Assembly: GCA_025558095.1 (NCBI GenBank)
Contig: JAIVFI010000007.1
Coordinates: 620,001-684,000 of the forward strand
Direction: 5' to 3'
Length of the DNA stretch: 64,000 bases
Source: Hyaloraphidium curvatum SAG 235-1
Taxonomy: Eukaryota; Fungi; Monoblepharomycota
Each line of letters begins with the position of its first letter. Positions within the stretch are counted from its first letter, which is position 1. This document shows positions 29,131-61,481 of the stretch, one piece after another. Made by a program: the position numbers and the translations under genes. Under the pieces are notes generated by a model. The model was not told the origin of the DNA and ran no database searches. It worked only from the letters and a program-made list of their open reading frames with translations.

Positions 29131-29272
29131 CGCGCGGGCGCCGAGGGGGGGAGGGGAAGGATGGCGCTGTCTGCTCGCGGCAGCGTCGAACAGCCGCGAA
29201 GGCAACACGCAAACGCCGCTGGACTCCACACGCGATTCCGTCGTCCAGAGGCCGGGTGGCCGCCGGGACACG

Positions 29273-30124
29273 ATGTCGGCCTTCAAAATAGGAATGCTGC
29301 TGGTGCGGACGGTCGGTACAGCACCCCGGGCCCCAGGACGCGCCCGAGCTCACGGGCAACCGCCGCAGCTTGCGAAGCCGGTCACGGGGGCGCTGAAGCG
29401 CCAGGCAAAAGAGAACGAAACGTTCAAACAGATCTGCATTCGCATCGCACAGGGGATGCACCGCACCGAGGTCAAACTGCGGACGGGGGCGCTCAACGAA
29501 TCCGTCTCGGCCCGCGAAGTCCGCCCGCTCAACGAAGCCAAGTAAGATCGCGGCCGCATATGTGCTGGCAGGATGTGCTGAGGCTCCCTTGCCCTCACCA
29601 GGGCTATCGACGCCGGTGCGGACTTCCTGGCCGAGGCAGTGACGTTCGGAATCGCCGCCTCAATCCTATTGTTTGAGCAATATCGATCCCGCCGCGACGC
29701 CAGGAACCGGAAGGAGTACGTGGACGTTTCCCTGAGCACCCTCGGCGAGAGCCAGCAGCGGCTGGCCGGGCTCGCGGACGACGTGCAGGCCATCAAGGCC
29801 GCGCTGGACTCGATGCGGGAGACCAACCTGCTCATCGCCGAGGGACTGGGCCGCCTAACGGCCGCGGAGCAGCAGGCCGAGGCGACGAACCGCCGGCTGG
29901 ACGGGGTGCTGGGGTTGCGGGACCTTTTCGGCGCGGAGGCGGCGCCGCAGCAGTTGGTCGTGAACCTGGAACCGGGGCGGCCGCCGGCGGGATCGGCCGC
30001 GCCAGGGGACACGCCGCTGTTTCTGAGCAGGCTGAATGCCAGGCTGGGACTGGGGTCCGCGCACGCGGGCGGGCTGCCGCCGATCACCGAGGAATCGGTG
30101 GCGCTCTCGCAGGTGGTCGGTTGA
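29273..30124 (+). CDS. OPA3-family mitochondrial protein
   Basis: FKIGMLLVRT|LAKPV, VRPLNEAK|AIDAGADFLAE, TM then coiled coil. Confidence 0.88.
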
Positions 30125-30279
30125 CGATCCCCGATGCAACGGTCTGGGTTCCGGGACATAGAGTGGATGTTGACTGGCTTCCCTCTTTCCTATGATCCGA
30201 TACGTTACCCCTATCCACATCTCTCTCTCGTCTGGCCGGTCGTTTTACGTACGTACTCGCCAACTTGTAGTCCGGTTTC

Positions 30280-31677
30280 TCAAGCCACGTAAGGCGAAAC
30301 CATCTTGGCGGGATCCACGACCTTGTCGAACACATCTTCGGTCACAAAGCCGAGCTTCAATGCGGCTTCCTTGAGGGTGAGGTCGTTGTCCAGGGCATAG
30401 TGTGCGATCTTGGAAGACTCGTCGTAGCCAATGACGGGCGACAGGGCCGTGACGAGCATGAGCGAGCGCTCCACGTATTCGCCGATCTTCTTCAGGTTCG
30501 GCTGCGTGCCCTCGATCAGGAACTTGCGGAAGTTGGTGCACCCGTCGGTCAGGAGGGTGATCGAGTGCATCACGTTGTAGATGATCAGCGGCTTGTAGAC
30601 GTTCATCTCGAGGTAGCCCCCCGACCCGGCGATCCCGACAGCCACGTCGTTGCCCATGACCTGGGCAGAGAGCATGGTGAGCGCCTCGGCCTGCGTGGGG
30701 TTGACCTTGCCCGGCATGATGGACGATCCGGGTTCGTTGGAGGGGATGATGAGCTCGCCGAACCCGGCGCGGGGTCCGCAGGACATGAGGCGGATGTCGT
30801 TGCCGATCTTGAACAGGGTGACGGCGAGCGTGCGCATGGTGCCAGAGAGCTGCACGAGCGCATCGTGCGCGCCCTGCACGGCGAACTTGTTCGGCGCAGT
30901 GATGAACGGCAGGCCCGTGAGCGCAGCGATCTGCGCCGCAGCGGCTTCCGCGAAGCCGGGGGCGGAATTCAGCCCTGTTCCGACCGCAGTGCCCCCGAGC
31001 GCGAGCTTGTACACGCCCTTGAGGCTGTCCTCGATGCGCTCGATATCGTCGCTGAGCGCCTCGGCGTAGCCGGACCACTCCTGGCCCAAAGTCAGGGGCG
31101 TGGCGTCCTGCATGTGCGTGCGGCCGATCTTGATGATCGCTTTCCATTCCACGGCCTTCGCGGCGATGGCATCGCGCAGCGCGGTGACAGATGGGATGAG
31201 GCTCCCCTTGACGTTGACGGCCGCGGCGATGCTCATGGCAGACGGGAAGGAATCATTGGATGACTGTGCCATATTGACGTGATCGTTTGGGTGCACGGGG
31301 CTCTTGGACCCGAGGGGCGTGCCGGCAAGCTGGCAGCACCGGTTGGAGATGACCTCGTTGACGTTCATGTTGAACTGGGTGCCGCTCCCGGTCATCCATA
31401 CGTGGAGGGGGAACATGTCCGCGTGCTGTCCCCCGAGAACTTCGTCGCACGTGTCCGAAATAAGCTGGAACTGTTGGTCCGGCAGTCGCCCGTCTCCATG
31501 ATTCGCGATTGCCGCCGCTTTTTTGAGAATCGCGTAGCTGATGATCATTTCGAGCGGGATGAGATCCTTGCCGATGGAGAAGTGCTGCAGCGAACGCTGC
31601 GTCTGGGCTCCCCAGAGCTTGTCAGCGGGCACGTCCACCTCTCCGAGGCTGTCGGTTTCTTTGCGGAACGTGGCCAT
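30280..31677 (-). CDS. fumC: Class II fumarate hydratase, intronless, bacterial-like, no presequence
   Basis: [71 protein letters not shown]; 465 aa single exon; in-frame stop upstream with no ATG in between. Confidence 0.95.
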
Positions 31678-31887
31678 CGTAGGGGTTGCGCCTACGAAAG
31701 TGCTCGAATGGGGACGTGGGGACGCACCCTCTAGCCAAAGTGAGCTCCGTCAAGGCCACGCCGATCGCCTTCGTTCAGTGCCGGACGCTTCGCGATCCAG
31801 TGATGCAGGCGTTGGAGCGACGACAAGTAGGTTCTTCTTGTATCCCTGTCTGTGGTGGTGGGGGCCCTGTTTCTAAATCCGGGTTGG

Positions 31888-31895
31888 TCACGTGA
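31888..31895. promoter_or_regulatory. TCACGTGA palindrome (E-box, bHLH-type site) in the fumC/malic enzyme divergent promoter
   Basis: ggTCACGTGAtc in the intergenic gap; function inferred only. Confidence 0.3.
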
Positions 31896-32032
31896 TCATG
31901 TGGATCCCTGTCTGTGTCCTTGTGTCCCCATCATCAGCGGGCGCAACTTCCCCGTTGTGTTCCGCTTCGATTCCGAGGTCGGCATTGCAACCGTTCGCTT
32001 GGAATCGTTCCCTCATGCTTTCCAGCAGCAGG

Positions 32033-33735
32033 ATGGCCGGGAACATCTCCAAGCGCGGCGCCGACCTGCTCCATGACCCTGCGCTGAACAAGTCGACAGC
32101 CTTCACCGAGGCCGAGCGCCAGGCGCTCGGCTTGGTCGGACTGGTTCCCGACGTCACCGAGTCGCAGGACCTGCAGCTTCAGCGCGTCGAGCTGCAGTTG
32201 TCGCACAAGACGTCCGACCTCGACCGTTACATCTTTCTCGTCAATCTCCTCGACCACGACGAAACGCTTTTCTACCGCCTCATCATGTCCGATCCCGCCC
32301 GCTTCCTGCCCATCGTGTACGATCCCACCATCGGTGACGCCTGCCTAAAGTTCGGCCACATCTTCCGGGGCCCCCGCGGCATGTACCTCTCGATCAAGCG
32401 CCGCGGCCACGTCAAGGAAGTCCTCCGCAACTGGCCTGAGAAGGACGTCAGGTTTATCTGCGTGACTGACGGCGGCCGCATCCTCGGTCTCGGCGACCTG
32501 GGTGCCAATGGGATGGGCATCCCGATCGGCAAGCTCCAGCTCTACACCGCGGCCGCCGGTGTGCCCCCCAAGGGCCTCATGCCCATGTACATCGACGCCG
32601 GCACCAACAACGAAGAGCTGCTCAAGGATCCCCTGTACCTCGGACTGCGCGAGCACCGCCCGTCGACCCAAGATCTGTTCTCGTTCGTCGACGAATTCAT
32701 GGAGGCGGTCAAGGAGGTGTTTCCGAAGTGCTGCGTGCACTTTGAAGACTGGACGGGCGTCGATGCCATGCATCTCATTGAGCGGTACCGTAACAAGTAC
32801 ACGATGTTCAACGACGACATCCAGGTTCGTCCGGTTTTCTCTCACGTCACCTCGGCGTCTCACGCATAGCTATGTCTTTGACGCCACTTCAGGGCACCGC
32901 CGGCATCACACTCGCCGGCATGATCAACGCCGTCAAACTCAAGGGAACCCACCTCAAGGACGAATCGTACCTCTTCCTCGGTGCTGGATCGGCCGGCATC
33001 GGATTGGCCAACCTGCTGTGCTCGGAGCTAGTCAACCAGGGCATGACGCTCGAGGAAGCCCGGAAGCAGGTCCACATGTTCGACGTCAACGGCCTTCTCG
33101 AGTCTACGCGGACCGATCTCGTAGACTTCCAGCTCCCGTACGCGCATCCCCATGGGCCCACCAAGGATTTTGTCGCCGCCATCGAATCAATCAAGCCAAC
33201 GACCATCATCGGCGTCAGCACGATCGGCGGCGCATTCAACAAGGCAGTGATCGAAGCCATGTGCAGGATCAATAAGCGCCCCATCGTTCTGGCCCTCTCC
33301 AACCCCACGTCAAAGGCGGAATGCACGGCCGAGCAAGCGTACACTTGGTCTGACGGCGCCGCCATCTATGCCGCCGGCGTGCCGTTTCCGCCCGTCCAGT
33401 TCAAGGGGCGAGAATACCTTGCGGGCCAAGCCAACAACGTCTACATCTACCCCGGAGTTGGGATGGCCATCTACGCAACGGAGGCAACCCGCGTCACGGA
33501 CAATATGTTCATCGAAGCGGCTTACGCTGTTGCCGATCACGTTTCGGACGCCGATCGGGCAAGGGGACTGCTGTACCCTCGGCAGTCCGACATTCTCGAG
33601 ACCGAGATCAAGACCGCCGCGCGCGTTGCCAAGCTTGTCTTCGACGCGGGCCTGGCGCGCGTGGAGAGGCCCAAGGATATCGAGGCCTTCATCAGGGCCC
33701 ACGTTTACGTGCCCAACTATACGGCACTGGTTTGA
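32033..33735 (+). CDS. Malic enzyme (probably NAD-dependent, MaeA/SfcA-like), one intron
   Basis: LPIVYDPT, VTDGGRILGLGDLGANGMGIPIGKL, FED, FNDDIQ|GTA (intron 32825-32892), GAGSAGIG, LSNPT, QANNVYIYPG; alternative in-frame ATGs at 31898 and 32015. Confidence 0.95.
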
Positions 33736-33830
33736 AGCCTTGTTGGAGGCAAAGGCACCATTGGTTTGGTTAGGTATCGTGTAGACGGGTGCGAAGTGGG
33801 TGGTTGTCAAGGAACAGAAGCCCCGCTCAA

Positions 33831-33872
33831 TCTATCGTGCCTTATTCACGTTCTATCTTGCCTTATTCACGT
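33831..33872. repeat. 21-bp tandem duplication (1 mismatch)
   Basis: tctatcgtgccttattcacgt / tctatcttgccttattcacgt. Confidence 0.85.
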
Positions 33873-34212
33873 GCGTACGCCACTTTCGACCATGCAAATC
33901 TCGAGATCATTCAATCTGCCGGCGAGAATCCTTGGCCTGCGAGAACGGGCATGGGCGTTGTTGGGCTGATCGGCAACACCCCGCCGATGGAGGAGCGCGC
34001 GTCGTTCTGTTTACGCGCGAAACCAAAGCTCGTCACCCCCGGCTCACCCTTCGCAGCCAATGTACGCACCTCCATTCGCTGCCGTGCCTTCTTGTTGCTG
34101 ACTTCTTTCTCCGTCCGTCCCCCAGCACCCTGTGTACGCCTCTTCCTTTCGACGTCACCACCGTCGGTCTCATCCTCCATCCCCAGGCGTTCCCTGCCGG
34201 GCCGCCCGCAGG

Positions 34213-35503
34213 ATGGTCTCCTTCACATGTGATGCGTGCCAGGACGTGATCAAGAAGGCCAAGCTCGACAACCACGGCTGCGGTGCCAGCTTCTCCTGCA
34301 TCGACTGCGGGGTGAGCTTCCCGGGCACGACCTACCGGGCGCACACGAGCTGCATCAGTGAGGCGGAAAAGTACCAAAAGTCCCTGTACAAGGGACCCAA
34401 GAAGGCGAGCGGGCAGGCCAACGGGACGCCGAAGGCCAACGGGCACGCGGAGGCGGGCAAGGCGAACGGGGTCCCCGAGGAGAACGGGCACGCCAAGGCG
34501 GAAAAGTCACCCGAACCTGCGGCGATGGCGGACGACAAGAAGCTGAGCAAGGAGGAGCGCAAAGCCCTGAAGAAGGCCGAGAAGCAGGCCCGGAAATCGG
34601 CAGAAGGGGCGGGGTCCAAGGCGGACGCCGAGGAGATGGAGGTGGACGCTTCGGAGGCTGCGCCGGCGGAACCGGCACCCGCAGAGGCTGCCAAGGCGGA
34701 AGGTAAAGAGGGCAAGAAGGACAAGAAGGACAAGAAGAAGTCGAAGGAAGCCGCTGAGCAGGTGGGGTCGTGATCATCGGTTTTCCTCGTCCATTGACAG
34801 CTTTCGTTGCCACTTGCTACGCCGAAGCAGAAATCGGAAGCCAAGTCCGCGGAACCCGAACCTCTTGGAGCGCAACTGCGCAAGCTCGAGGCCCTGAAGG
34901 CCGAGGGCAAGGATGGGGCCGGCGTTTCGGACATTGCCGCCGCAGCTGCCGCCGCCGGAATCTCCGCGGACGTCGTCGAAGGGACGCCGGCCAAGGAGGA
35001 GAAGAAATCAAAGAAGGAGAAGAAGGCCAAGGGGGACAAGGGCGAGGCGCCCGCGGAGTCGACTGAGGAGAAGCCGGCAGCGGCCGAGGAGACGCCTTCG
35101 TCCAAGAAGTCGAAGCGCGACCGCGAGGAGAAGGCTGCGAAACCCGAAGCTGCGGAGGAGCCGCCGGCCAAGAAGGCGAAGGCGTCGGAAGCCCAGGGCT
35201 CCCTCGCAGACACGCTGACGGAGAAGACGCACGCTCTGCTTGCAAAGGCAAGGACGCGGCAGTTTCGTCAGGCATCGGTTTGCTGACGCGTTTCGTGAAA
35301 GGGCTCTCACACCCTGCAATCGCTCAAGAAGGAGCTCAACGATAGCTTCGGCTCGAAGGACGCGCGGAAAGCAGCTGGGTACAACCAGGAGAAGTTCGAT
35401 CAGCTGGTGAGCGGTGTGGTAGTCTTTTGGGCAGAACTCGGCTCATGCGCTCCAGGTCCACGTGGAGGTCAAGGATGGGGCTTTCGTGCTTCGTTTCGCC
35501 TGA
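34213..35503 (+). CDS. LYAR-type C2HC zinc-finger nucleolar protein
   Basis: MVSFTCDACQDVIKKAKLDNH..C...FSCIDC...F...Y.AHTSCISEAEKYQ; Lys/Glu-rich body. Confidence 0.9.
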
Positions 35504-35567: not shown

Positions 35568-36836
35568 CTACATTCTCTTCTCCCGTTTTGCCGGCCCGCC
35601 CTTCTTTCCCTCATAAAGGGACAGGAAGTCCGCTTTCTTCCGAGCATCCAGCCCTGTCCGACGTTGGGAAAGTATTCTCCCCAGCACCATGGACGCGAGG
35701 TCCGTCTGGTTCACTGGCGATGGCTGCGAAAACAGCGAAGCGGAGACGGAAGATGGAGGTGTATGGGCAACGGAGAGGAAGTTGCCGTACTGAACGACAG
35801 ACACGGTCAGCGCAGGCTGTTGATATAAGCAGCGCGGCCCACCTGGCACATGAGCCTCGCCAGATGAAGCAACCGACTGCCCAGGGGTATCGTTGGAGCA
35901 AAAGTTTCGTACTCGTACTTGAGGCCGACAACGTAGGCCGCAAGCACTCCCGATCCCGCAGACGGAGCGCCCTCGACGTGACAGCTCTCCAGCAATGCCG
36001 AGCTGCTGCTCTCCGGATCCGTCCCCAGGAAGCGCAAAAGGCCCTTGCCGTTGGTCGTTGTCGCCTCGGGAAAGAGGGCCAGCGGACCAGCCGACCAGAG
36101 CTGGGCTCGGACCTCGCTCAGCTCGAACCGTTGCTCGGTCGGTTTCGCCGCCCATAGCGCGGAGGGATCCGTCGCCACCAGAGCCAAAGCCTTCCAAAAT
36201 GTCCGGGGAACGACCGTTTCCTTGCCAGTTCCGCTCGGGTACAGGTAGTACGAGGGAGTGAAGGCGTAGGCAAGGTAGAAGAGGTCGACGTACGACGAAT
36301 GGTTGACCACCAAAAGGGTCGAGGACGTGATGGGCGGGGCGCGAAGGTCTTCTGCCGGTGCACTCGCATCTCGTCGCCTGATTAGAGCGCGTTCAGGTTG
36401 ACGAGGGAGAGGGAAACGCAGAGGGCGAACCCACCCTTTCCTGGTCGAGACCACCTCGAATGGGATGTAATGAAATCCCATGGCAAAGAGGACGATCCGC
36501 GCTCCGATGACATAGAACGCTCTGCGCGATCCCCAGGCCGCGGACGCCCCCAGCACCTGCGATTCATTCAATTCGGAATGAGAACCAGCGATCCCCCGGC
36601 TCCAAATCAACACACACCCCAAAGAGGAGCGATAGTAGGTCTCCAATGAGCATAATCAAGAGTCCAAGGAGGAGCAGAACGAGCCGCAGGGGGAAGAGTA
36701 GCAAAGATCCCACGAGGTAGTCGCGGAGGCCCGCGAGCACCGCGGACGCTGCATCGCGGTCAACCCGGGCCGGCTTCACGACCAGGAAAGGTGCAATGCC
36801 CGTCCCGCTATCTCTGAACGCTCCGAACTTCTCCAT
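35568..36836 (-). CDS. Lysophosphatidic acid acyltransferase Loa1/Vps66-like
   Basis: MEKFGAFRDSGTGIAPFL, NHSSYVD (HX4D), FPEATTTNGKGLLRF. Confidence 0.85.
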
Positions 36837-36918
36837 GCGGGCTCTATTTGGCCCGGGCGGTTCGTCTGGCAATCAGTCTCGACGCGTTGTTTATCCGCAC
36901 TCGCGCACTACCTCAACT

Positions 36919-38091
36919 ATGTACGGCGACGGTAGGCGCACGAACTACGTGGTCGGTTCTCAAGCCCGCGAGCGAAGAATGGAATACGAGAGCAACGCCG
37001 TCCGTTCTCTGGATGAGCTCGATTTGGCCGTCGAGGACCTGCGGAGGGACGGCTACACGGCCATTCGGGCGCTGACGGATGCCGAGGAGCTCGAGGACAT
37101 TCGGAGCAAGTTCTGGGCGTTTTTCGAAGCTCTGGGGACCGGTGTCCGACGAGAAGATCCCGGGACTTGGGGAGACGGACGGTGGCCTCTGCAGGACCGT
37201 GGGATCCTGCATGGCTACAATGCCGGTTGGAACCGAGCGAGCTGGGCCGTCCGAACGCACAGTGATGTCCGCCGCTGCTTTGCGAGAGTCTGGGGAACGC
37301 GAGGCTTGGATCCGAAACCGGAGTTGCCCGCGGAGGACGACGACCGTCTTCTCACCAGCCTGGACGGGATCTGCCTCATTCGGCCCCCGGAGGTTGTACC
37401 CGAGGAAGCCGAGAGGATAAGGAAGGGGACGTTCCGTGCATGGCCCCACGTCGATCAGCACCCTTTGAAGAGGGGTTTGGACACTATTCAGGGCTTGGTG
37501 ACGCTCTACGATTCTGGCCCGGATGACGGCGGGCTCGTCGTGTACGCGAAATCGCACACGGACTTTGCCAGCAAGTTCTGGCTCCACACGAGGATGCGGC
37601 TCGCGATGGCCCTCCCGTCGGTCAACGACGGCATCGTGCGCGGCCACAAAAAGATCAAGCTTTGCGGGCCGGCCGGCACACTCTTCTTGTGGGACAGCCG
37701 CACGGTCCACTGCAATGAGGCGCCAAAGTTGGGACGTTCGCTGCCGGACGTCGTCTCCCCAGATCCGAAACGACCGGACCTTGCATATCGACCTAGGGCT
37801 GTCGTGTATGTGTGCCTTTCCCCGGCAGCGTTGTGCACGCCCGCGCAGCTTGCCAGTGTTGCCAAGGCGGCGGCCGAGCGGCGTTCGTACGGGCACAACG
37901 TCTATCGCGTGGGACTGTTTCCGGCTTGGAAGCCGCTCGTTGGTCCCAGAATGGCTTCCTCTGATCCTGTCGACCCTGCGGCTGTCGATCCTGGCAAAGG
38001 CTGGGCAGAAGCGCTGGACGATACTAGCAAAAGAATGGTTGCGCTTGTGCCATACGAAGATGGGCAAAGCTCAAGCAACAGTCGCCTTTAG
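36919..38091 (+). CDS. Phytanoyl-CoA dioxygenase-like 2OG-Fe(II) oxygenase, intronless, C-terminal SRL
   Basis: WPHVDQ (HxD), IQGLVTL..SGPDDGGLVV..SH, AGTLFLWDSRTVH, R..VYVC. Confidence 0.8.
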   Translation: MYGDGRRTNYVVGSQARERRMEYESNAVRSLDELDLAVEDLRRDGYTAIRALTDAEELEDIRSKFWAFFEALGTGVRREDPGTWGDGRWPLQDRGILHGYNAGWNRASWAVRTHSDVRRCFARVWGTRGLDPKPELPAEDDDRLLTSLDGICLIRPPEVVPEEAERIRKGTFRAWPHVDQHPLKRGLDTIQGLVTLYDSGPDDGGLVVYAKSHTDFASKFWLHTRMRLAMALPSVNDGIVRGHKKIKLCGPAGTLFLWDSRTVHCNEAPKLGRSLPDVVSPDPKRPDLAYRPRAVVYVCLSPAALCTPAQLASVAKAAAERRSYGHNVYRVGLFPAWKPLVGPRMASSDPVDPAAVDPGKGWAEALDDTSKRMVALVPYEDGQSSSNSRL

Positions 38092-38114: not shown

Positions 38115-39734
38115 TCACGCATCGTTGACCAAAGTTGCGCGCGACGAGGTCGCAGTCTTGGCCGGTTTCGTCGAGCGCCTCGCGCTCCTCGCGTCCACTA
38201 GAAGCTTCCAGAGCTTGACATAGAACTCTTTGGCTCGCTTCTCGCCAAACCCCGGGTTCGCTGCGAGAATCCTTCCAACGATCACGTTCTCCGGCAGCCT
38301 CAAAATCTGCATCCCCGATTCGTTGCCTTCAGGGCATATGGATTCGGCGGCAATTTTACCGGCCGACGTGGTCTCGATCCAATGCTTCAGGTGGTCGTAG
38401 GTCCAAGTGGCAGGATCGCGAGGGTTGTATGCAGGCGCGGTGGAGCGGGCACCGTTGCTGTTGAGCCCCACCTTAAGCGGCCCCGCGTACCGCAGCGTGT
38501 TGAGCGAATGCGCAACGTCGACAGGGGAGCAGCAGGCAATCACGACGCATTTGGAGGGGCGGCGGGCCTCCGTGTCAAACACGTCCTTCAAAAGTAGCGT
38601 GATCTTCGAGTTCCGGAACGGCACGTGTACGTGCGGCTTCTTGGGCCCTCCTGCTTGGACGGCAGAGGCCGACAGGGTAGCCCGCGAGCGGATGCAGTCC
38701 TTCAGAGTCATGAGCGACGAATTGATTGCTTTGGTCTCCTTCAGCCGTTCTGCGCCGTGGCCTTCCCTGTCCACGTGCCGCTCACTCCCCGCAAGATCCA
38801 GCAGATACAGTATGCCATCCTCGCTGCCGGGCCTGGTGAGGTCCTGCAAGGCGATCTTGCAGACCGCATGTGAGCGCGAGCTGCCGGCTTCATTCATTTT
38901 GGTCGTGGCGCTGTTTCTCTTGGAAAAAGCTTGCTCCATCAGAGACTTGAATTCGAGGGAATCCAGGGGCTCATGCACGGCAGCGTTGTGGATTTGAACC
39001 TGGCCGAACGCATCCTCCAGGATCGAAACAGTGGTTCCCGACCGTAGCTGGGCCTCGCGAATCGAGACGCCGGTCCTGTCCGAAACGCCCTTTCGGACCG
39101 CGGGCACAGGGTTGGGAGATGGGCTTGGCGCCGCACTGCCTTCCGGCTTCGGGAGCAGGTCGGTCACGTTGGAGCCCAGGATCTCGATCACGGTCAGCTT
39201 GACGCGGCGGGCCGGCTGCTCTGCGGCGACCAGGGGGGACGCAAAAAGATCCCGTCCGACTTGATCGATGATCGAGGTCATTGTAAACGTCTTTCCCGAG
39301 CCGGTTTGGCCGTATGCGAGGACGGCGCCTGAGCCGCCCTCCAGCGCCCACGACACGAGCTCCTTTCCGGCAGCCCGGTACACGGCCTCGTTCGAATCGC
39401 CGTCCCCAAAAGCAGCATCGAAGGCGAACTCGTGGGTCTTCATCAGCGGTTCGATTCCAGTGACTTTGAGCGAGGGCTCGTGCAGGTGGACGCGGTCGTG
39501 GTGCACGGTTGCCAGTCCGAGGGGGCTCGTCGAGAAATCCACCGACGGAATCATCGGCCGCACGCGGCAAAAAACCTTGATGTCGGCGGTACTGAGCAGC
39601 TCCGGTTCCGAGTCCCGGGGACCGGCGGGAAGGCCGTTCCGGAACTCGTCGATTCGAGCCCGGAAAAAGTCCGGATAGCGGTGGACGACCTGGTTGGGCC
39701 CGCCCTCGGAATCGGAAGGGAGCGGTGGCATCAT
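38115..39734 (-). CDS. Kinesin motor protein (kinesin-13-like), intronless
   Basis: IKVFCRVRP, FAFDAAF, YGQTGSGKT, SSRSHA, LDLAGSER, HVPFRNSKIT, SLNTLRYA. Confidence 0.9.
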   Translation of the reverse strand: MMPPLPSDSEGGPNQVVHRYPDFFRARIDEFRNGLPAGPRDSEPELLSTADIKVFCRVRPMIPSVDFSTSPLGLATVHHDRVHLHEPSLKVTGIEPLMKTHEFAFDAAFGDGDSNEAVYRAAGKELVSWALEGGSGAVLAYGQTGSGKTFTMTSIIDQVGRDLFASPLVAAEQPARRVKLTVIEILGSNVTDLLPKPEGSAAPSPSPNPVPAVRKGVSDRTGVSIREAQLRSGTTVSILEDAFGQVQIHNAAVHEPLDSLEFKSLMEQAFSKRNSATTKMNEAGSSRSHAVCKIALQDLTRPGSEDGILYLLDLAGSERHVDREGHGAERLKETKAINSSLMTLKDCIRSRATLSASAVQAGGPKKPHVHVPFRNSKITLLLKDVFDTEARRPSKCVVIACCSPVDVAHSLNTLRYAGPLKVGLNSNGARSTAPAYNPRDPATWTYDHLKHWIETTSAGKIAAESICPEGNESGMQILRLPENVIVGRILAANPGFGEKRAKEFYVKLWKLLVDARSARRSTKPAKTATSSRATLVNDA

Positions 39735-40095
39735 GGCGCGGTAGAATGTTGGTGGTAGGAGTCGAGTAGAATTCAAAGATGCATACTGATGTTTTCCGCG
39801 GACCCCCCAGAGGAGGCGCTACTCAGTGATATGCCAAGAGTTCAAGTATTGCGGATCATTACATAGTCCCATGCTAAGTGAGCCTTCGTTTCGATCGTTC
39901 GGTTGGACAGGTCAGGTCAGCAGAAGCATGATCGCCATCCGCCTCATTAGCAGACCAGGGGTGGCCAGTGCCCAGGTCCGTCCTGCGGAGCATTTTGGCA
40001 GTGGCCAATTTCTTTCCGGAGATCCTTGTCGAGCTCTGACAAGGGACCCCCGCGGCCACGGAGTGATCGATACGGCGAATCCCTCGAAAGGTCCG

Positions 40096-41391
40096 ATGCG
40101 GCTCTTCACGCGTTTAGCCCGTCGGATCGGGCGTTTTCCTCCGCCAAACGGTCCGTCCGCATTGCAAAGACGATGTCTCAACCTACCTGCGGGCCATTTG
40201 GCGCCTTGCAGCCCCCGGAGCGCGTCCCGCCCCGCGCGACAGTTCCACGCCACCGCCGCACGGCGATTTTGGGACGACCGGCTCGATGACCGGCTCGCGA
40301 AGATGGCCGAGGACAGCGATTTGATCTCGAGGCAGCTCGCGGACCTGGGCAACGCCGAGAATCCCGACCCGGGGAAGTTTGCCGAGCTGGGGAGGCAGGC
40401 CTCGGAGCTGGGCCCCGTGGTGGAGCCGTACAGGGAGCTCACGAGGGCGAGGCAGGAGCTCGCGGAACTGGATGCCTTGCTGAAGGAAACGGAGGGCAAG
40501 GGCGGGGACCGGGAGCTGGGAAAGCTTGTCGAAGAGGACCGCGCAAGCTGCCTAGCGAGGATCGAGGAGCTGCAGGACGAAGTGCTCGCGGCCCTGGTGC
40601 CGGACGACGTCAGCGACTCGGCGAATGCCATCCTCGAAATCCGTTCCGGGGCGGGGGGCGACGAGGCCAGCCTCTTTGCCGAGGAGATGTTCCGGATGTA
40701 CGAGCGGTTCGCGCAGTCCAGGGAATGGCGCTTCATTACCATGTCGACGGCTCCGGCCGACCGGGGGCTGCGGGAGGCCATCGCTTCCGTCGGTGGCGAG
40801 AACGTCTTTGGGATGCTCAAGTTCGAGAGCGGCGTGCACCGCGTGCAGAGGGTGCCCGACACGGAAACAAAGGGGCGCACGCACACGAGCACGATCACTG
40901 TTGCCGTCATGCCGGAACCGAACGAAGCGCTGACGAGCGCGATGAAGGACTTTCGGATCAACGAGCTGGATCTGAGGATCGAGACGATGAGGGCATCCGG
41001 TGCCGGCGGGCAGTCCGTCAACACGACGGACTCCGCGGTGCGCATTACGCACATTCCGACGGGGACGGTGGTGCACATTGCTACCGAGCGGTCGCAGCAC
41101 CAGAACAAGGCCAAGGCCATGCAGATCCTGCAGGCCCGCCTATGGGACATGAGGCGCCGCGAAGAGGCGGAGAAGCGGTCGAAGCTCCGGGCCTCGCTGG
41201 TCGGCTCTGGCGCACGGACCGAGAAGATCCGGACCTACAATTTTCCGCAGGGGAGGATCACCGACCACCGGATCAACCTGACTGCGTCCAACATCAGCGC
41301 TTTCATGGACGGCGATGGCCTCGGGGAGATCGTCGAGAAGCTGGTGGCTGAGGAACGGATGAATGATATCCTCAACTCCATCGACGTGTAA
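40096..41391 (+). CDS. MRF1: Mitochondrial peptide chain release factor 1, intronless
   Basis: GAGGDEA, FESGVHRVQRVPDT (PxT), GAGGQSVN (GGQ), RSQHQNK, IRTYNFPQGRITDHR; basic presequence. Confidence 0.93.
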   Translation: MRLFTRLARRIGRFPPPNGPSALQRRCLNLPAGHLAPCSPRSASRPARQFHATAARRFWDDRLDDRLAKMAEDSDLISRQLADLGNAENPDPGKFAELGRQASELGPVVEPYRELTRARQELAELDALLKETEGKGGDRELGKLVEEDRASCLARIEELQDEVLAALVPDDVSDSANAILEIRSGAGGDEASLFAEEMFRMYERFAQSREWRFITMSTAPADRGLREAIASVGGENVFGMLKFESGVHRVQRVPDTETKGRTHTSTITVAVMPEPNEALTSAMKDFRINELDLRIETMRASGAGGQSVNTTDSAVRITHIPTGTVVHIATERSQHQNKAKAMQILQARLWDMRRREEAEKRSKLRASLVGSGARTEKIRTYNFPQGRITDHRINLTASNISAFMDGDGLGEIVEKLVAEERMNDILNSIDV

Positions 41392-41495
41392 TTCAAGACC
41401 ATGAAAAAGACGCTACATCGCTACATCGCTTCAATATCAACTAAACGACAATCAATTTCACGCCCCAAGACGTCTCTGCTTCCGTTCGGTACCCT

Positions 41496-42224
41496 TCAAA
41501 ACCCGCGGCTCCGCTGGTGCTCGGCGTCCGTCAGCGGCACGAACTGCACGCCCATCAAGTGGTGCTTGTGGACGGACCCATCGGCATGGCGATCAACCCG
41601 GACAAGCTGTGCAGACATGAGAATGATGGGCGCAAAGAGCAGACAGCCACTTGCCTCCTGCACGTAGGTTCCGACAGGAATCAGGAGGCTGCCTCCCGGT
41701 TTCAGCTGCTCGATCAGGGCTTTCGGAATCTGCGGCGCCGCTGCCCCGACGTGGATGGCATCGAACGGGGCCCCGTCCTTCCAACCCTGGCGGCCGTCTC
41801 CGACAAAGAACTTGAGGCGTCCGTCGCGGAGAAACTCCGGCTTGTCCCGTTCGACATTCTTGTGGGACAGGTCCACGAGCTCCTGGATGTGGTCCACTCC
41901 AATGATGCGGCCCGTGGGCCCGACCATCTCGGCCATGCACGCAGCGAGGTATCCAGAGCCCGAACCGACGTCGAGGGCGCTCATTCCCGGCTTCAGGTGG
42001 TTCTTCAGCTCCTCGAGCATGTAGGCATGCATATGCGGCGCCGAGATCGTCGCGCCGTAGCCAATGGTCTGCGGGCTGTCGAAGTAGGGGTCACCCTGTC
42101 GAACGTAGTGGCGGCGGTCGATCGCCAGCATTGCATTCTCCACGGTGGGAGACCGGATTATCCCGGCTTTTGCGAGGTTGGCAACGAGCTCGGCATTCGT
42201 GGCCCCGCTGCACCTCCAGGCCAT
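41496..42224 (-). CDS. PCMT1: Protein-L-isoaspartate O-methyltransferase
   Basis: MAWRCSG, IGYGATISAPHMHA, LDVGSGSGYL, GDGRQG, APFDAIHVGAA, V.FVPLTD; possible N-terminal extension to 42482. Confidence 0.93.
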   Translation of the reverse strand: MAWRCSGATNAELVANLAKAGIIRSPTVENAMLAIDRRHYVRQGDPYFDSPQTIGYGATISAPHMHAYMLEELKNHLKPGMSALDVGSGSGYLAACMAEMVGPTGRIIGVDHIQELVDLSHKNVERDKPEFLRDGRLKFFVGDGRQGWKDGAPFDAIHVGAAAPQIPKALIEQLKPGGSLLIPVGTYVQEASGCLLFAPIILMSAQLVRVDRHADGSVHKHHLMGVQFVPLTDAEHQRSRGF

Positions 42225-42549
42225 GGCTTGGCCTCGCGGAGAGTCGTCCGGATTTGCGCTCGCCGGCGGCAGCTTGGCGCGGGGCGACTGGAGCCCCTGG
42301 TCGCGCGGTGAGTCGCTTTGAGCTTCGCGCGTCAACGGCTGCCCGACCCGGGGCGACAGGAACCACAGGACTCCCGCGAGCGCTAGAACAAAGATACTGC
42401 GCAACGTGGCGCCCAGAGATACGGGTGCCGTCTCCGGCTAGCGCGTGTGATGGCCTGCCGGAGTGCGGGAGTGATTCACCATCGAGGACGCGGTCAGTCG
42501 CGTCTGGTCACCGCACCTTCCACCTGACCTTCCCCTTCCCCTGTCGAAC

Positions 42550-59125: not shown

Positions 59126-61481
59126 ATGTCGGCCCTGCGGGCAGCTTTCGGGTCGACGGGCCGCCTGCAGAGGCTTGCCCAGGTCAGTCAGGCCCCCCGT
59201 CTTGCCCTTTCTGAGGATCGGAAGTGACCACGGGCTTGCCGCACTTCCGTGACGCCTCTTGGGACACAGGCTCGGACTTTCCATTCCACGGCCGCTCGCT
59301 GGGTAAGCAATTGGCCGCACTGCAGCCTGAACGAACTTACCTTGCTGATCGTCGGTCCTTTGGGCCTTCCTGTTCCTTGCAACTGCTCGCGTGTGACCTT
59401 GGTCCTCCTGACCGCCGTCGGCTTTCATTGCTCCGTGATTTGGCACCCTTGTGCCCTGCTTCCAATTTTCCAGCAACAAAAATACCGGATTGAGCAGGAC
59501 ACTTTCGGCGAGCTGCAGGTCCCGGCTGATCGGTACTGGGGCGCGCAGACTCAGAGGTTGACCCCATCGCAGCTGCCATGATCCGCGATCCTCATCCGTG
59601 GCCCTCCCAAACAGGTCGCTCCAGAACTTCAACATCGGAGGCAAGACGGAGAGGATGCCGGAACCGCTGATCCGGGCCTACGGAGTGTTGAAGATGGCCT
59701 GTGCCCACGTCAACATGGAGCTCGGGGTTTTGGACAGCAGGCTCGGCGGCGCGATCGTGGATGCGGCAACGGAAGTGCGTCGCGCCGTTGGCGTGATCAA
59801 ATGGCGACCGTTCTGAGCGGTGCCCGATCGTCCAGGTCATGGAGGGCAAGCTTTCGGACCACTTCCCTCTCGTGGTCTGGCAGACTGGATCAGGGACCCA
59901 GACCAACATGAACGTCAACGAAGTCGTGGCAAACCGCGCTATAGAAATGCTGGGAGGCCAGTTGGGCAGCAAGAAGCCGGTTCACCCGAACGATCACGTC
60001 AACATGGGCCAGTCTTCCAACGACAGGTACGGTGCCTCCCGTAATCGCTCACCGACACGTAACACTGATTGCCTTGATCCCGTAGTTTCCCGACGGCAAT
60101 GCACGTGTGCGCCGTCATGGAGATCCAGGACAGGCTCCTGCCCGACATGAGGGCGCTCCACGCTGCGCTCAAGCAGAAGTCTATCGAGTTCCAGGACATT
60201 GTGAAGATTGGGCGGTAGGGTCCTCCTTTGGACGCTGATTCATCAATGCTGACGCGGGCATGATTGAAGGACGCACTTGCAGGATGCCACCCCCTTGACC
60301 CTCGGCCAGGAGTTCTCTGGGTACGCCACCCAGGTCGAGTACGGCATTCAGAGGGTTGAGCAGGCGCTCCCTCGCCTGTACGCTCTGGCGCAGGGCGGCA
60401 CTGCCGTTGGCACAGTTGGTTGCCTTGCCCGGGCCTCCCTTACCGCCACTCACTGGTGATCCAGGGCCTCAACTCCATCAAGGGCTTCGACGTCAAGGTT
60501 GCCGAGGAGATTGCCAAGGTTACCGGTTATCCCTTCCGCACTGCACCAAACAAGGTTGGTTCCGTGATGGATCGGTTTCGCGGTGGGCAAATCCTCAGCC
60601 CGCGCTTTTCAGTTCGAAGCTCTTGCCGCCCACGACGCCATTGTTGAGGCTAGCGGCGCCATCAACACTTTTGCCTGCTCGATGATGAAGATTGCCAACG
60701 ACATTCGGTTGCTGGGTACGGCTCTTCACCGTCAAGACTGTCTTGGCCTGACACTATTCACCCGCAGGATCCGGTCCGCGCTGCGGTCTTGGCGAGCTGA
60801 ACCTCCCGGAAAACGAGCCCGGCTCGTCCATCATGCCCGGCAAGGTGAACCCTACCCAGTGCGAAGCCATGACTATGGTGTGCGCGCAGGTGATGGGAAA
60901 CCATACGGCTGTCACCGTTGCCGGGTCGAACGGACACTTTGAGCTCAACGTGTTCAAGCCCGTCCTCATCCGCAATCTCCTGCACTCCATCCGCTTGATG
61001 GGAGACGCCTGTGACAGGTGCGACCTTGGAGATGGTCGCGTTCGCGAGCTGCTGCTGAATCCGGATCACCCGTCCAGCTTCACGAGGAACTGTGTCCAGG
61101 GCATCACAGCCAATGAGAAGCGCATCAACCAGCTTCTCCATGACTCGCTGATGCTGGTTACGGCCCTCAACCCTTACATTGGCTATGGTCAGTGATTCTT
61201 TCTTGTCTGTGATGGCATTGCTAACACAATCCGACTTTGCATGGCGTGCTTCCACACTTCAGACAGTGGGTACCTTGATGTGCATCATCTCAATCATTTC
61301 TAACCGGTCCGGCTTTGCAGAGGCTGCCAAGACCGCGAAGAAGGCCCACAAGGAGGGCACTACCCTCAAGGAGGCTGCAATGTCTCTGGGCTATGTCACC
61401 GAGGAGCAGTTCAAGGACTGGGTGCGGCCTGAGAACATGCTTGGTCCTCGGGAACCTGGGGCACCAGCAGTCGAGCACTGA
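59126..61481 (+). CDS. FUM1: Native mitochondrial fumarate hydratase (about 12 introns)
   Basis: Presequence MSALRAAF...[72 protein letters not shown]. Confidence 0.95.

Follow-up and report, generated by a model that had tools for sequence, protein, structure and literature searches.

A fumarase and malic enzyme gene pair in the fungus Hyaloraphidium curvatum that probably derives from a bacterial operon

Our analysis of a 64,000-nucleotide stretch of the genome of Hyaloraphidium curvatum, a member of Monoblepharomycota, indicates that two neighbouring genes within it, one for a fumarase and one for a malic enzyme, are a fragment of a bacterial operon (fumC together with a malic enzyme of 544 amino acids, aa) that was inserted in the chromosome between an OPA3-like and a LYAR-like gene; we put the probability of this reading at close to 0.9. 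The stretch, which we call the window, is C7:620001-684000 in a host assembly of 31.9 Mb and 55 contigs; a kinesin gene within it (38115-39776) agrees at 93%, over 97% of its length, with an H. curvatum protein at NCBI. An earlier note on this DNA had proposed that the pair was co-transferred from a bacterium, and our analysis bears this out: both genes are of bacterial origin, they are adjacent in donors, they fall in the same clade, and RNA links the block to a host gene.

The two genes lie head-to-head, their start codons separated by 355 bp (31678-32032). The fumarase gene is a continuous open reading frame of 465 aa on the minus strand (30280..31677), covered end to end by one of the RNA contigs described below (RNA contig 1), with no intron and no N-terminal extension relative to bacterial homologues. 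Its assignment as a class II fumarate hydratase of the fumC type draws on NCBIfam and Pfam matches as well as on the tree. It scores 674.3 bits against TIGR00979 fumC_II, where the cut-off is 664.75, with residues 4-461 aligned to model positions 1-458, and it matches Lyase_1 (PF00206) at 339 bits and FumaraseC_C (PF10415) at 74.6 bits; against aspartase models it stays below the cut-offs (489 vs 510 and 435 vs 681). The catalytic motifs are present, namely the GSSxMPxKxN signature loop, TGSGTQ, and THxQDA in the form THMQDA.

The malic enzyme is encoded on the plus strand in two coding exons, which were searched, aligned and put in trees as two separate rows and were never joined. The first (32033..32824) encodes 264 aa, ends with the Q of NDDIQ and carries the N-terminal malic domain (PF00390, 222.7 bits); the second (32893..33735) encodes 280 aa plus the stop codon and carries the NAD(P)-binding domain (PF03949, Malic_M, 295.2 bits), for a total of 544 aa. 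On the MaeA/SfcA-type model NF010052, which has 564 positions, the exons cover 14-273 and 272-560, that is, both domains in their proper order. Coding exon 1 holds IVYDPT, IPIGKL, HFEDW and NDDIQ, motifs which we take, by analogy with solved malic enzymes, to supply the catalytic Tyr/Lys and the metal-binding Glu/Asp. Identification as a malolactic enzyme (NF041582) was considered and rejected, the exons scoring 263.8 and 221.8 bits vs a whole-protein cut-off of 850. Thus several descriptive claims of the earlier note stand as made: coordinates and Pfam matches agree on a head-to-head pair 355 bp apart between an OPA3-like and a LYAR-like gene, the fumarase indeed lacks introns and a presequence, and the motifs quoted for both enzymes, catalytic ones included, are found in the translations.

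Both proteins have close bacterial homologues. Thousands of metagenome proteins of 467/470 aa match the fumarase at 85-89% identity (89% for the bacterial protein P0002), and the enzymes of 80 named bacterial genomes (Acidobacteriota, Pseudomonadota, Verrucomicrobiota and others) match it at 76-84%. For the malic enzyme, whose family was gathered with the full-length bacterial orthologue L001:8601-10235 as query, coding exon 1 aligns without gaps to residues 1-264 of the 544-aa L001 enzyme at 86% identity (up to 89% elsewhere), and coding exon 2 aligns, again without gaps, to residues 265-543 at 78% (up to 79% elsewhere). Moreover, the two bacterial genes are immediate neighbours. On contigs that are clearly bacterial and encode a top fumarase match, fumC is followed after ~30 bp by the 544-aa malic enzyme on the same strand and then by an OprB porin; upstream of fumC are genes for a PAS histidine kinase and a LytTR response regulator. 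The spacing of ~30 bp on one strand is seen in L001-L003, L092 and L093, of which L092 is the contig with the closest fumarase and L093 is an NCBI contig from a metagenome-assembled genome (MAG), its malic enzyme named Chthoniobacterales by NCBI. Among the 80 named loci a malic enzyme adjoins fumC in 32, always on the same strand, mostly downstream and in a few cases upstream; the close ~544-aa type accounts for 23 of those 32, with 56-88% identity by exon.

The fungal pair is therefore like the bacterial fumC-malic enzyme(-oprB) pairs (L001, L092, L093 and the 32 of 80 named genomes) in the lengths of its proteins (467 aa in bacteria and 465 aa here for the fumarase, 544 aa in both for the malic enzyme) and in being gapless and colinear at 78-89% identity. 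However, the bacterial pairs are tandem, ~30 bp apart and intronless, with the porin after them and sometimes a two-component system before, and the fungus has retained neither these neighbours nor the spacers. We compared 29900-30279, 31678-32032 and 33736-34200 with all the bacterial loci by tblastx and blastn for remnants of bacterial spacers or neighbours, and the matches were only composition-driven noise.

Trees of each gene place the two proteins among bacterial, not fungal, sequences. In a tree of 112 fumarases the window protein falls in a clade of 35 rows, with a support of 97 in the Shimodaira-Hasegawa-like approximate likelihood ratio test (SH-aLRT); the clade includes L001, the best metagenome matches and three named bins, and the terminal branch of the window protein is 0.2. 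In the malic enzyme tree (62 rows) coding exon 1 sits deep in the matching clade, its best identity being 89%, and coding exon 2, on a long branch, is basal in the surrounding clade, which has support 97. When both exons were held in the matching clade, the constrained tree came out 13.4 log-likelihood units above the free quick search (approximately unbiased test, p-AU 0.77). These comparisons support the view that the fumarase and malic enzyme trace to one bacterial clade that carries both genes adjacent. They also favour co-transfer on the points that the earlier note raised for checking, namely whether both proteins branch with bacteria, whether they share a source, and whether the closest homologues adjoin each other in their own genomes; the same bacterial clade is found in both trees, the constrained tree is the better one, and in bacteria fumC directly adjoins the gene for the 544-aa malic enzyme, in the same orientation.

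Which bacteria might have supplied the pair? On the contig with the closest fumarase, the marker SRP54 is 69% identical to that of a Chthoniobacterales-labelled MAG and ~50% identical to those of three other bins, and it is 98-99% identical to those of two genomes of that MAG's order. Judged by these matches, the nearest sampled carriers are Chthoniobacterales (Verrucomicrobiota). The species-representative genomes nearest by SRP54 hold a fumarase only 57-58% identical, so the module is accessory and these matches do not single out a donor species. Fumarases of this type occur across many phyla, on large plasmids and beside insertion sequence (IS) elements; we conclude that fumC and the malic enzyme form a mobile, accessory module in bacteria of soil and freshwater. 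As a possible donor type we considered plasmid 2 of Methylocella tundrae (L099) and rejected it: its fumC is 79% identical, but its malic enzyme is of a different subtype (47%). As for the plasmid contexts themselves, in L099 and in plasmid p2 of a Burkholderia sp. (L100), the fumarase has a different malic enzyme subtype and poxB on one and IS66 and IS3 transposases on the other. Bins labelled Mycobacterium and Bathyarchaeota (L004, L038, L050, L058) hold the same fumarase type at 79-83% identity, with the malic enzyme upstream of the fumarase on the same strand in L004; such carriers may reflect either wide transfer among prokaryotes or binning errors.

The block is integrated in the fungal chromosome. 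Two public sequencing runs of the same organism contain it, namely X1 and one DNA run. Since GT..AG introns are missing from its contigs, X1, which had been labelled by guess, must be an RNA run. RNA contig 1 is made up of 29368-29541 and 29602-31873, and comprises the OPA3-like gene in spliced form, the whole fumarase and 196 nucleotides (nt) past the fumarase start codon. The OPA3-like gene is the left flanking host gene (29267..30124, plus strand), with Pfam OPA3 matches on 29267-29541 (62.8 bits) and 29603-30124 (39 bits) and a GT..AG intron of 60 nt (29542-29601) that is removed in this contig. It is convergent with the fumarase, and the simplest reason for the merger of the two in one contig is that their 3' ends overlap. 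RNA contig 3 is made up of 31927-31977, 32029-32824 and 32893-33800, which is the malic enzyme with both of its introns removed. Word depths of the RNA contigs are 143-171, and both genes are fully covered.

These data bear directly on the possibility that the block is bacterial contamination or a product of chimeric assembly. Such an origin would fit the high identity to bacterial proteins and the intronless fumarase, and the only DNA run is shallow and possibly the assembly's own data. However, contamination is ruled out because bacterial genes are unspliced and the fumarase shares a contig with a host gene that is spliced: that contig runs from the OPA3-like splice junction through the entire fumarase and so links the block to its left flank, and two GT..AG introns, neither of them present in the bacterial genes, have been removed from the malic enzyme transcript. 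In addition, the block lies inside a contig of 890,790 bp among intron-bearing genes, and its nucleotide identity to the nearest bacterial genes is only 74-81%. We therefore give an artefact of this kind practically no credence, and return to the integrated operon fragment.

The malic enzyme transcript turned out to have two introns rather than one. The transcript begins, as far as RNA contig 3 extends, with a non-coding exon without ATG (31927..31977, plus strand), which is followed by an additional intron in the 5' leader, of 51 nt and bounded by GT..AG (31978..32028, plus strand; joint 31975>32027 in RNA contig 3, cut +2). The coding intron (32825..32892, plus strand), of 68 nt and likewise GT..AG, lies between DDIQ and GTAG and is absent from RNA contig 3, and nothing corresponds to it in the bacterial proteins of 544 aa, which are colinear with the fungal enzyme; it sits at a CAG/G site inside a catalytic motif. 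The malic enzyme transcript thus gained two spliceosomal introns after the transfer, and both are certain gains because the bacterial ancestors are intronless. Since the non-coding exon has no ATG, 32033 is the first AUG in the observed malic enzyme RNA, and it yields a protein without extension over the bacterial one. At the other end RNA contig 3 stops at 33800, leaving an untranslated 3' stretch at 33736..33800 (plus strand).

From the sequence and the RNA contig ends, the 355-bp spacer can be divided into the fumarase leader, with RNA to 31873, ~53 bp without an RNA contig (31874-31926), and the malic enzyme leader. The contig ends at 31873 and 31927 are ~54 bp apart, with the genes on separate RNA contigs. 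No polycistronic RNA of both genes was seen, the genes being divergent, on separate contigs and parted by the 53-bp stretch without a contig. The data are consistent with the spacer being a shared divergent promoter, which we presume it to be. The spacer also holds a 16-nt direct repeat (31839-31854 and 31901-31916, 94% alike and 62 nt apart). In the interval that it encloses, where the two RNA contigs end on either side, lies the palindrome TCACGTGA (31888-31895). As a functional E-box the palindrome was discarded: it occurs once in the window vs 0.95 times by chance, which is no evidence of function.

Several observations weigh against a single inserted operon fragment expressed in this manner. 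The fungal pair is divergent and every close bacterial pair is tandem, so a rearrangement must be assumed, and we found no scar of an inversion and no convincing inverted or direct repeat bracketing either gene. In the free malic enzyme tree coding exon 2 stands alone on its long branch. At a finer scale the nearest rows differ by sub-lineage, being the P0002 group and L001 for the fumarase and the P0210 group for coding exon 1 of the malic enzyme; because of this difference the exact donor would have to be an unsampled one. The RNA contigs give neither strand nor the starts and true ends of transcripts, and transcription running on from the OPA3-like gene might account for the RNA that covers the fumarase. 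RNA contig 3 begins downstream of an in-frame ATG (31898), so a longer isoform of the malic enzyme, which the observed RNA does not support, may still exist. Finally, with regard to the age and spread of the transfer, the genomes searched include no close relative of the host.

Some of these points could also be read as signs of two independent bacterial transfers, in which fumarase and malic enzyme arrived at different times and either landed together or were later brought together. The orientation is unlike that of the donor operon, the nearest rows of the two gene trees belong to different sub-lineages, and divergence is greater in the C-terminal half of the malic enzyme than in the fumarase. 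However, both genes fall in the same bacterial clade, which carries them as immediate neighbours, and two insertions 355 bp apart in a genome of 31.9 Mb would be a large coincidence. We consider independent arrivals unlikely for these reasons, and a single transfer of the bacterial pair remains our preferred account.

The host has its own versions of both enzymes. A multi-exon class II fumarase, native to the fungus, lies in the window at ~59483-61448 on the plus strand and is 35-65% identical, exon-wise, to the transferred fumarase, so that the second, intron-bearing fumarase of which the earlier note spoke is there. A further multi-exon fumarase-like gene is found at C32:524537-526128 (L085, L086), 45-61% identical exon-wise to the transferred one; with the C7 and C32 copies and the transferred gene, the class II fumarase-like genes of the host number at least three. 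On C16 lies the native malic enzyme, which is intron-rich and, compared by exon, 32-43% identical. The presence of intron-rich native copies of both enzymes argues against vertical inheritance of the pair, and so does a 2026 survey which describes eukaryotic class II fumarase as mostly vertical from the mitochondrial ancestor and names no fungal exception (PMC13655608). Could the genes instead have passed from the fungus to bacteria? One observation favours vertical inheritance or such a reverse transfer, in that a malic enzyme half scores nearer to plant and animal enzymes of the PDB than to E. coli MaeA (253 vs 155 bits). Against it, the fungus supplies the one eukaryotic leaf, as compared with thousands of bacterial sequences of many phyla, and the bacterial genes stand in operon context with OprB porins and two-component regulators. 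We regard both variants as exceedingly improbable beside a transfer from bacteria to the fungus.

Both genes appear to have been maintained since that transfer. Of the 156 columns without variation in 111 bacterial homologues, the fumarase retains 155; the malic enzyme retains 86 of its 87 invariant columns (53 of 54 in coding exon 1 and 33 of 33 in coding exon 2). The C-terminal half of the malic enzyme thus keeps every such column, although it has diverged from bacterial homologues more than the N-terminal half (78% vs 86% identity, branch 0.32 vs 0.22). Codon positions 1+2 are 83-95% identical to those of the nearest bacterial genes, while four-fold sites are only 40-53% identical, which is close to chance at a third-position GC content (GC3) of ~0.8. 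Taken together, the near-saturated synonymous sites, the conserved positions 1+2 and the two gained introns indicate an old transfer followed by purifying selection on both genes. One might still ask whether the genes are decaying relics, integrated and no longer functional. Their terminal branches, at 0.2 for the fumarase and 0.22-0.32 for the two malic enzyme exons, exceed those of neighbouring bacterial sequences, and the RNA over the fumarase comes from unstranded contigs. Yet both reading frames are intact, the invariant columns are retained almost without loss, synonymous sites are near saturation with positions 1+2 conserved, and the malic enzyme RNA is correctly spliced, all of which makes decay very unlikely and favours two functional genes of bacterial descent. 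Base composition is uninformative as a signal of transfer, GC3 being 0.78-0.86 for the two genes of the block, 0.70-0.82 for genes of the host and 0.83-0.84 for homologues in bacteria; codon usage correlates with that of both host and donor and decides nothing.

How could a bacterial operon fragment have become the locus we see? In the most likely scheme, a tandem fumC-malic enzyme fragment would have been inserted once, and one of the genes would then have been inverted, turning the tandem operon pair into a divergent pair with a shared promoter region of 355 bp. The second gene of a bacterial message is normally not translated in eukaryotes. In a divergent layout each gene would obtain a promoter-proximal start and its own monocistronic mRNA, and the contig ends at 31873 and 31927 would fit two transcripts that leave a core of ~53 bp in opposite directions.

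As to what the enzymes do, we can reason from their sequences. Compared with their bacterial homologues the two proteins are not extended at the N-terminus, and their C-termini lack a tripeptide of the SKL kind (peroxisomal targeting signal type 1, PTS1); because presequence and PTS1-like end are both lacking, the two enzymes probably act in the cytosol. The malic enzyme reads FDVNGLL after the conserved Asp of the dinucleotide fold. NADP-dependent malic enzymes presumably carry D-S-K at this place, where the determinant residues of the animal enzymes lie, and since the sequence here is D-V-N rather than D-S-K, the cofactor is probably NAD. The bacterial homologues are annotated inconsistently in this respect, as NAD-dependent by NCBI and as NADP+ by JGI. 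The pair would then convert fumarate to L-malate and on to pyruvate, CO2 and NAD(P)H in the cytosol, beside the native, intron-rich enzymes of mitochondrial type. The roles that the earlier note put forward, disposal of fumarate and redox balance under hypoxia, are hypothetical. We tentatively suggest that the locus may be a domesticated operon, in which the shared divergent promoter keeps the two steps co-regulated and provides a bacterial-style cytosolic route from fumarate, either imported or released by purine and arginine synthesis, to pyruvate and reducing power, a route that is separate from the mitochondrial cycle; this is a speculative proposal, and we would not bet on it at even odds.

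It is well known that fungi have acquired single bacterial genes, while cases in which neighbouring operon genes arrived as one piece are few and best known in yeasts. Our literature search returned no account of nuclear gene transfer in Hyaloraphidium and none of a fungal fumarase-malic enzyme pair. Outside the fungi, oomycetes of the genera Pythium and Phytopythium acquired a bacterial class II fumarase (PMC5023847). As in Hyaloraphidium, the bacterial-type enzyme there stands beside the one derived from endosymbiosis; however, the oomycete case concerns a single gene, ~56% identical to its proposed donor and with no linked malic enzyme (PMC5023847), whereas identity here reaches 89% and the donor's neighbour gene is present as well. 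A closer parallel in organization is the enterobactin siderophore operon that was transferred into Wickerhamiella/Starmerella yeasts (bioRxiv 10.1101/399394). In both cases functionally linked bacterial neighbours appear to have been taken up together, kept clustered and adapted to eukaryotic expression. Unlike the yeast operon, the present locus has two genes only, both of central carbon metabolism, and its recipient is an early-diverging, non-yeast fungus of the Monoblepharomycota. It also differs in that the pair was reoriented head-to-head, that one gene gained two introns, and that no polycistronic RNA was seen.

More generally, the locus adds a clean multi-gene bacterial transfer in a deep fungal lineage. 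Steps in the adaptation of an operon can be followed at this one place, namely separate transcripts from what we presume to be a divergent promoter, the loss of the bacterial spacers, and the gain of introns in leader and coding sequence. Both introns have a known intronless starting point, for which there would be few other examples, and they should be useful for work on intron origin. The locus also offers a testable hypothesis on cytosolic C4-acid metabolism in a little-studied planktonic freshwater fungus.

Turning to the surroundings of the block, the LYAR-like gene that flanks it on the right (34132..34773, plus strand) matches Pfam zf-LYAR and is covered by RNA contig 4, which also contains a GT..AG joint upstream of it (34061>34126). 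The GC content of the window ranges over ~0.51-0.72 in 1-kb steps, and the fumarase-malic enzyme block is inconspicuous in composition. An 80-kb Logan contig of a eukaryote (L098, from run SRR26194948) has genes for PCMT, a mitochondrial release factor and a kinesin in the same order as the window at 38115-42500, the kinesin being 53-67% and the release factor 65% identical, so its source may possibly be a relative of Hyaloraphidium. There is no LYAR, OPA3, fumarase or malic enzyme gene within 10 kb on L098, and it is therefore uninformative on the insertion site. About 30 nt past the end of the malic enzyme RNA contig, at 33831-33872, a unit of 21 nt occurs twice in tandem (95% alike); we found no connection of this repeat to the insertion. 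At 36796-38091, 3 kb from the block, lies an intronless open reading frame with a weak match (25 bits) to the PhyH dioxygenase family.

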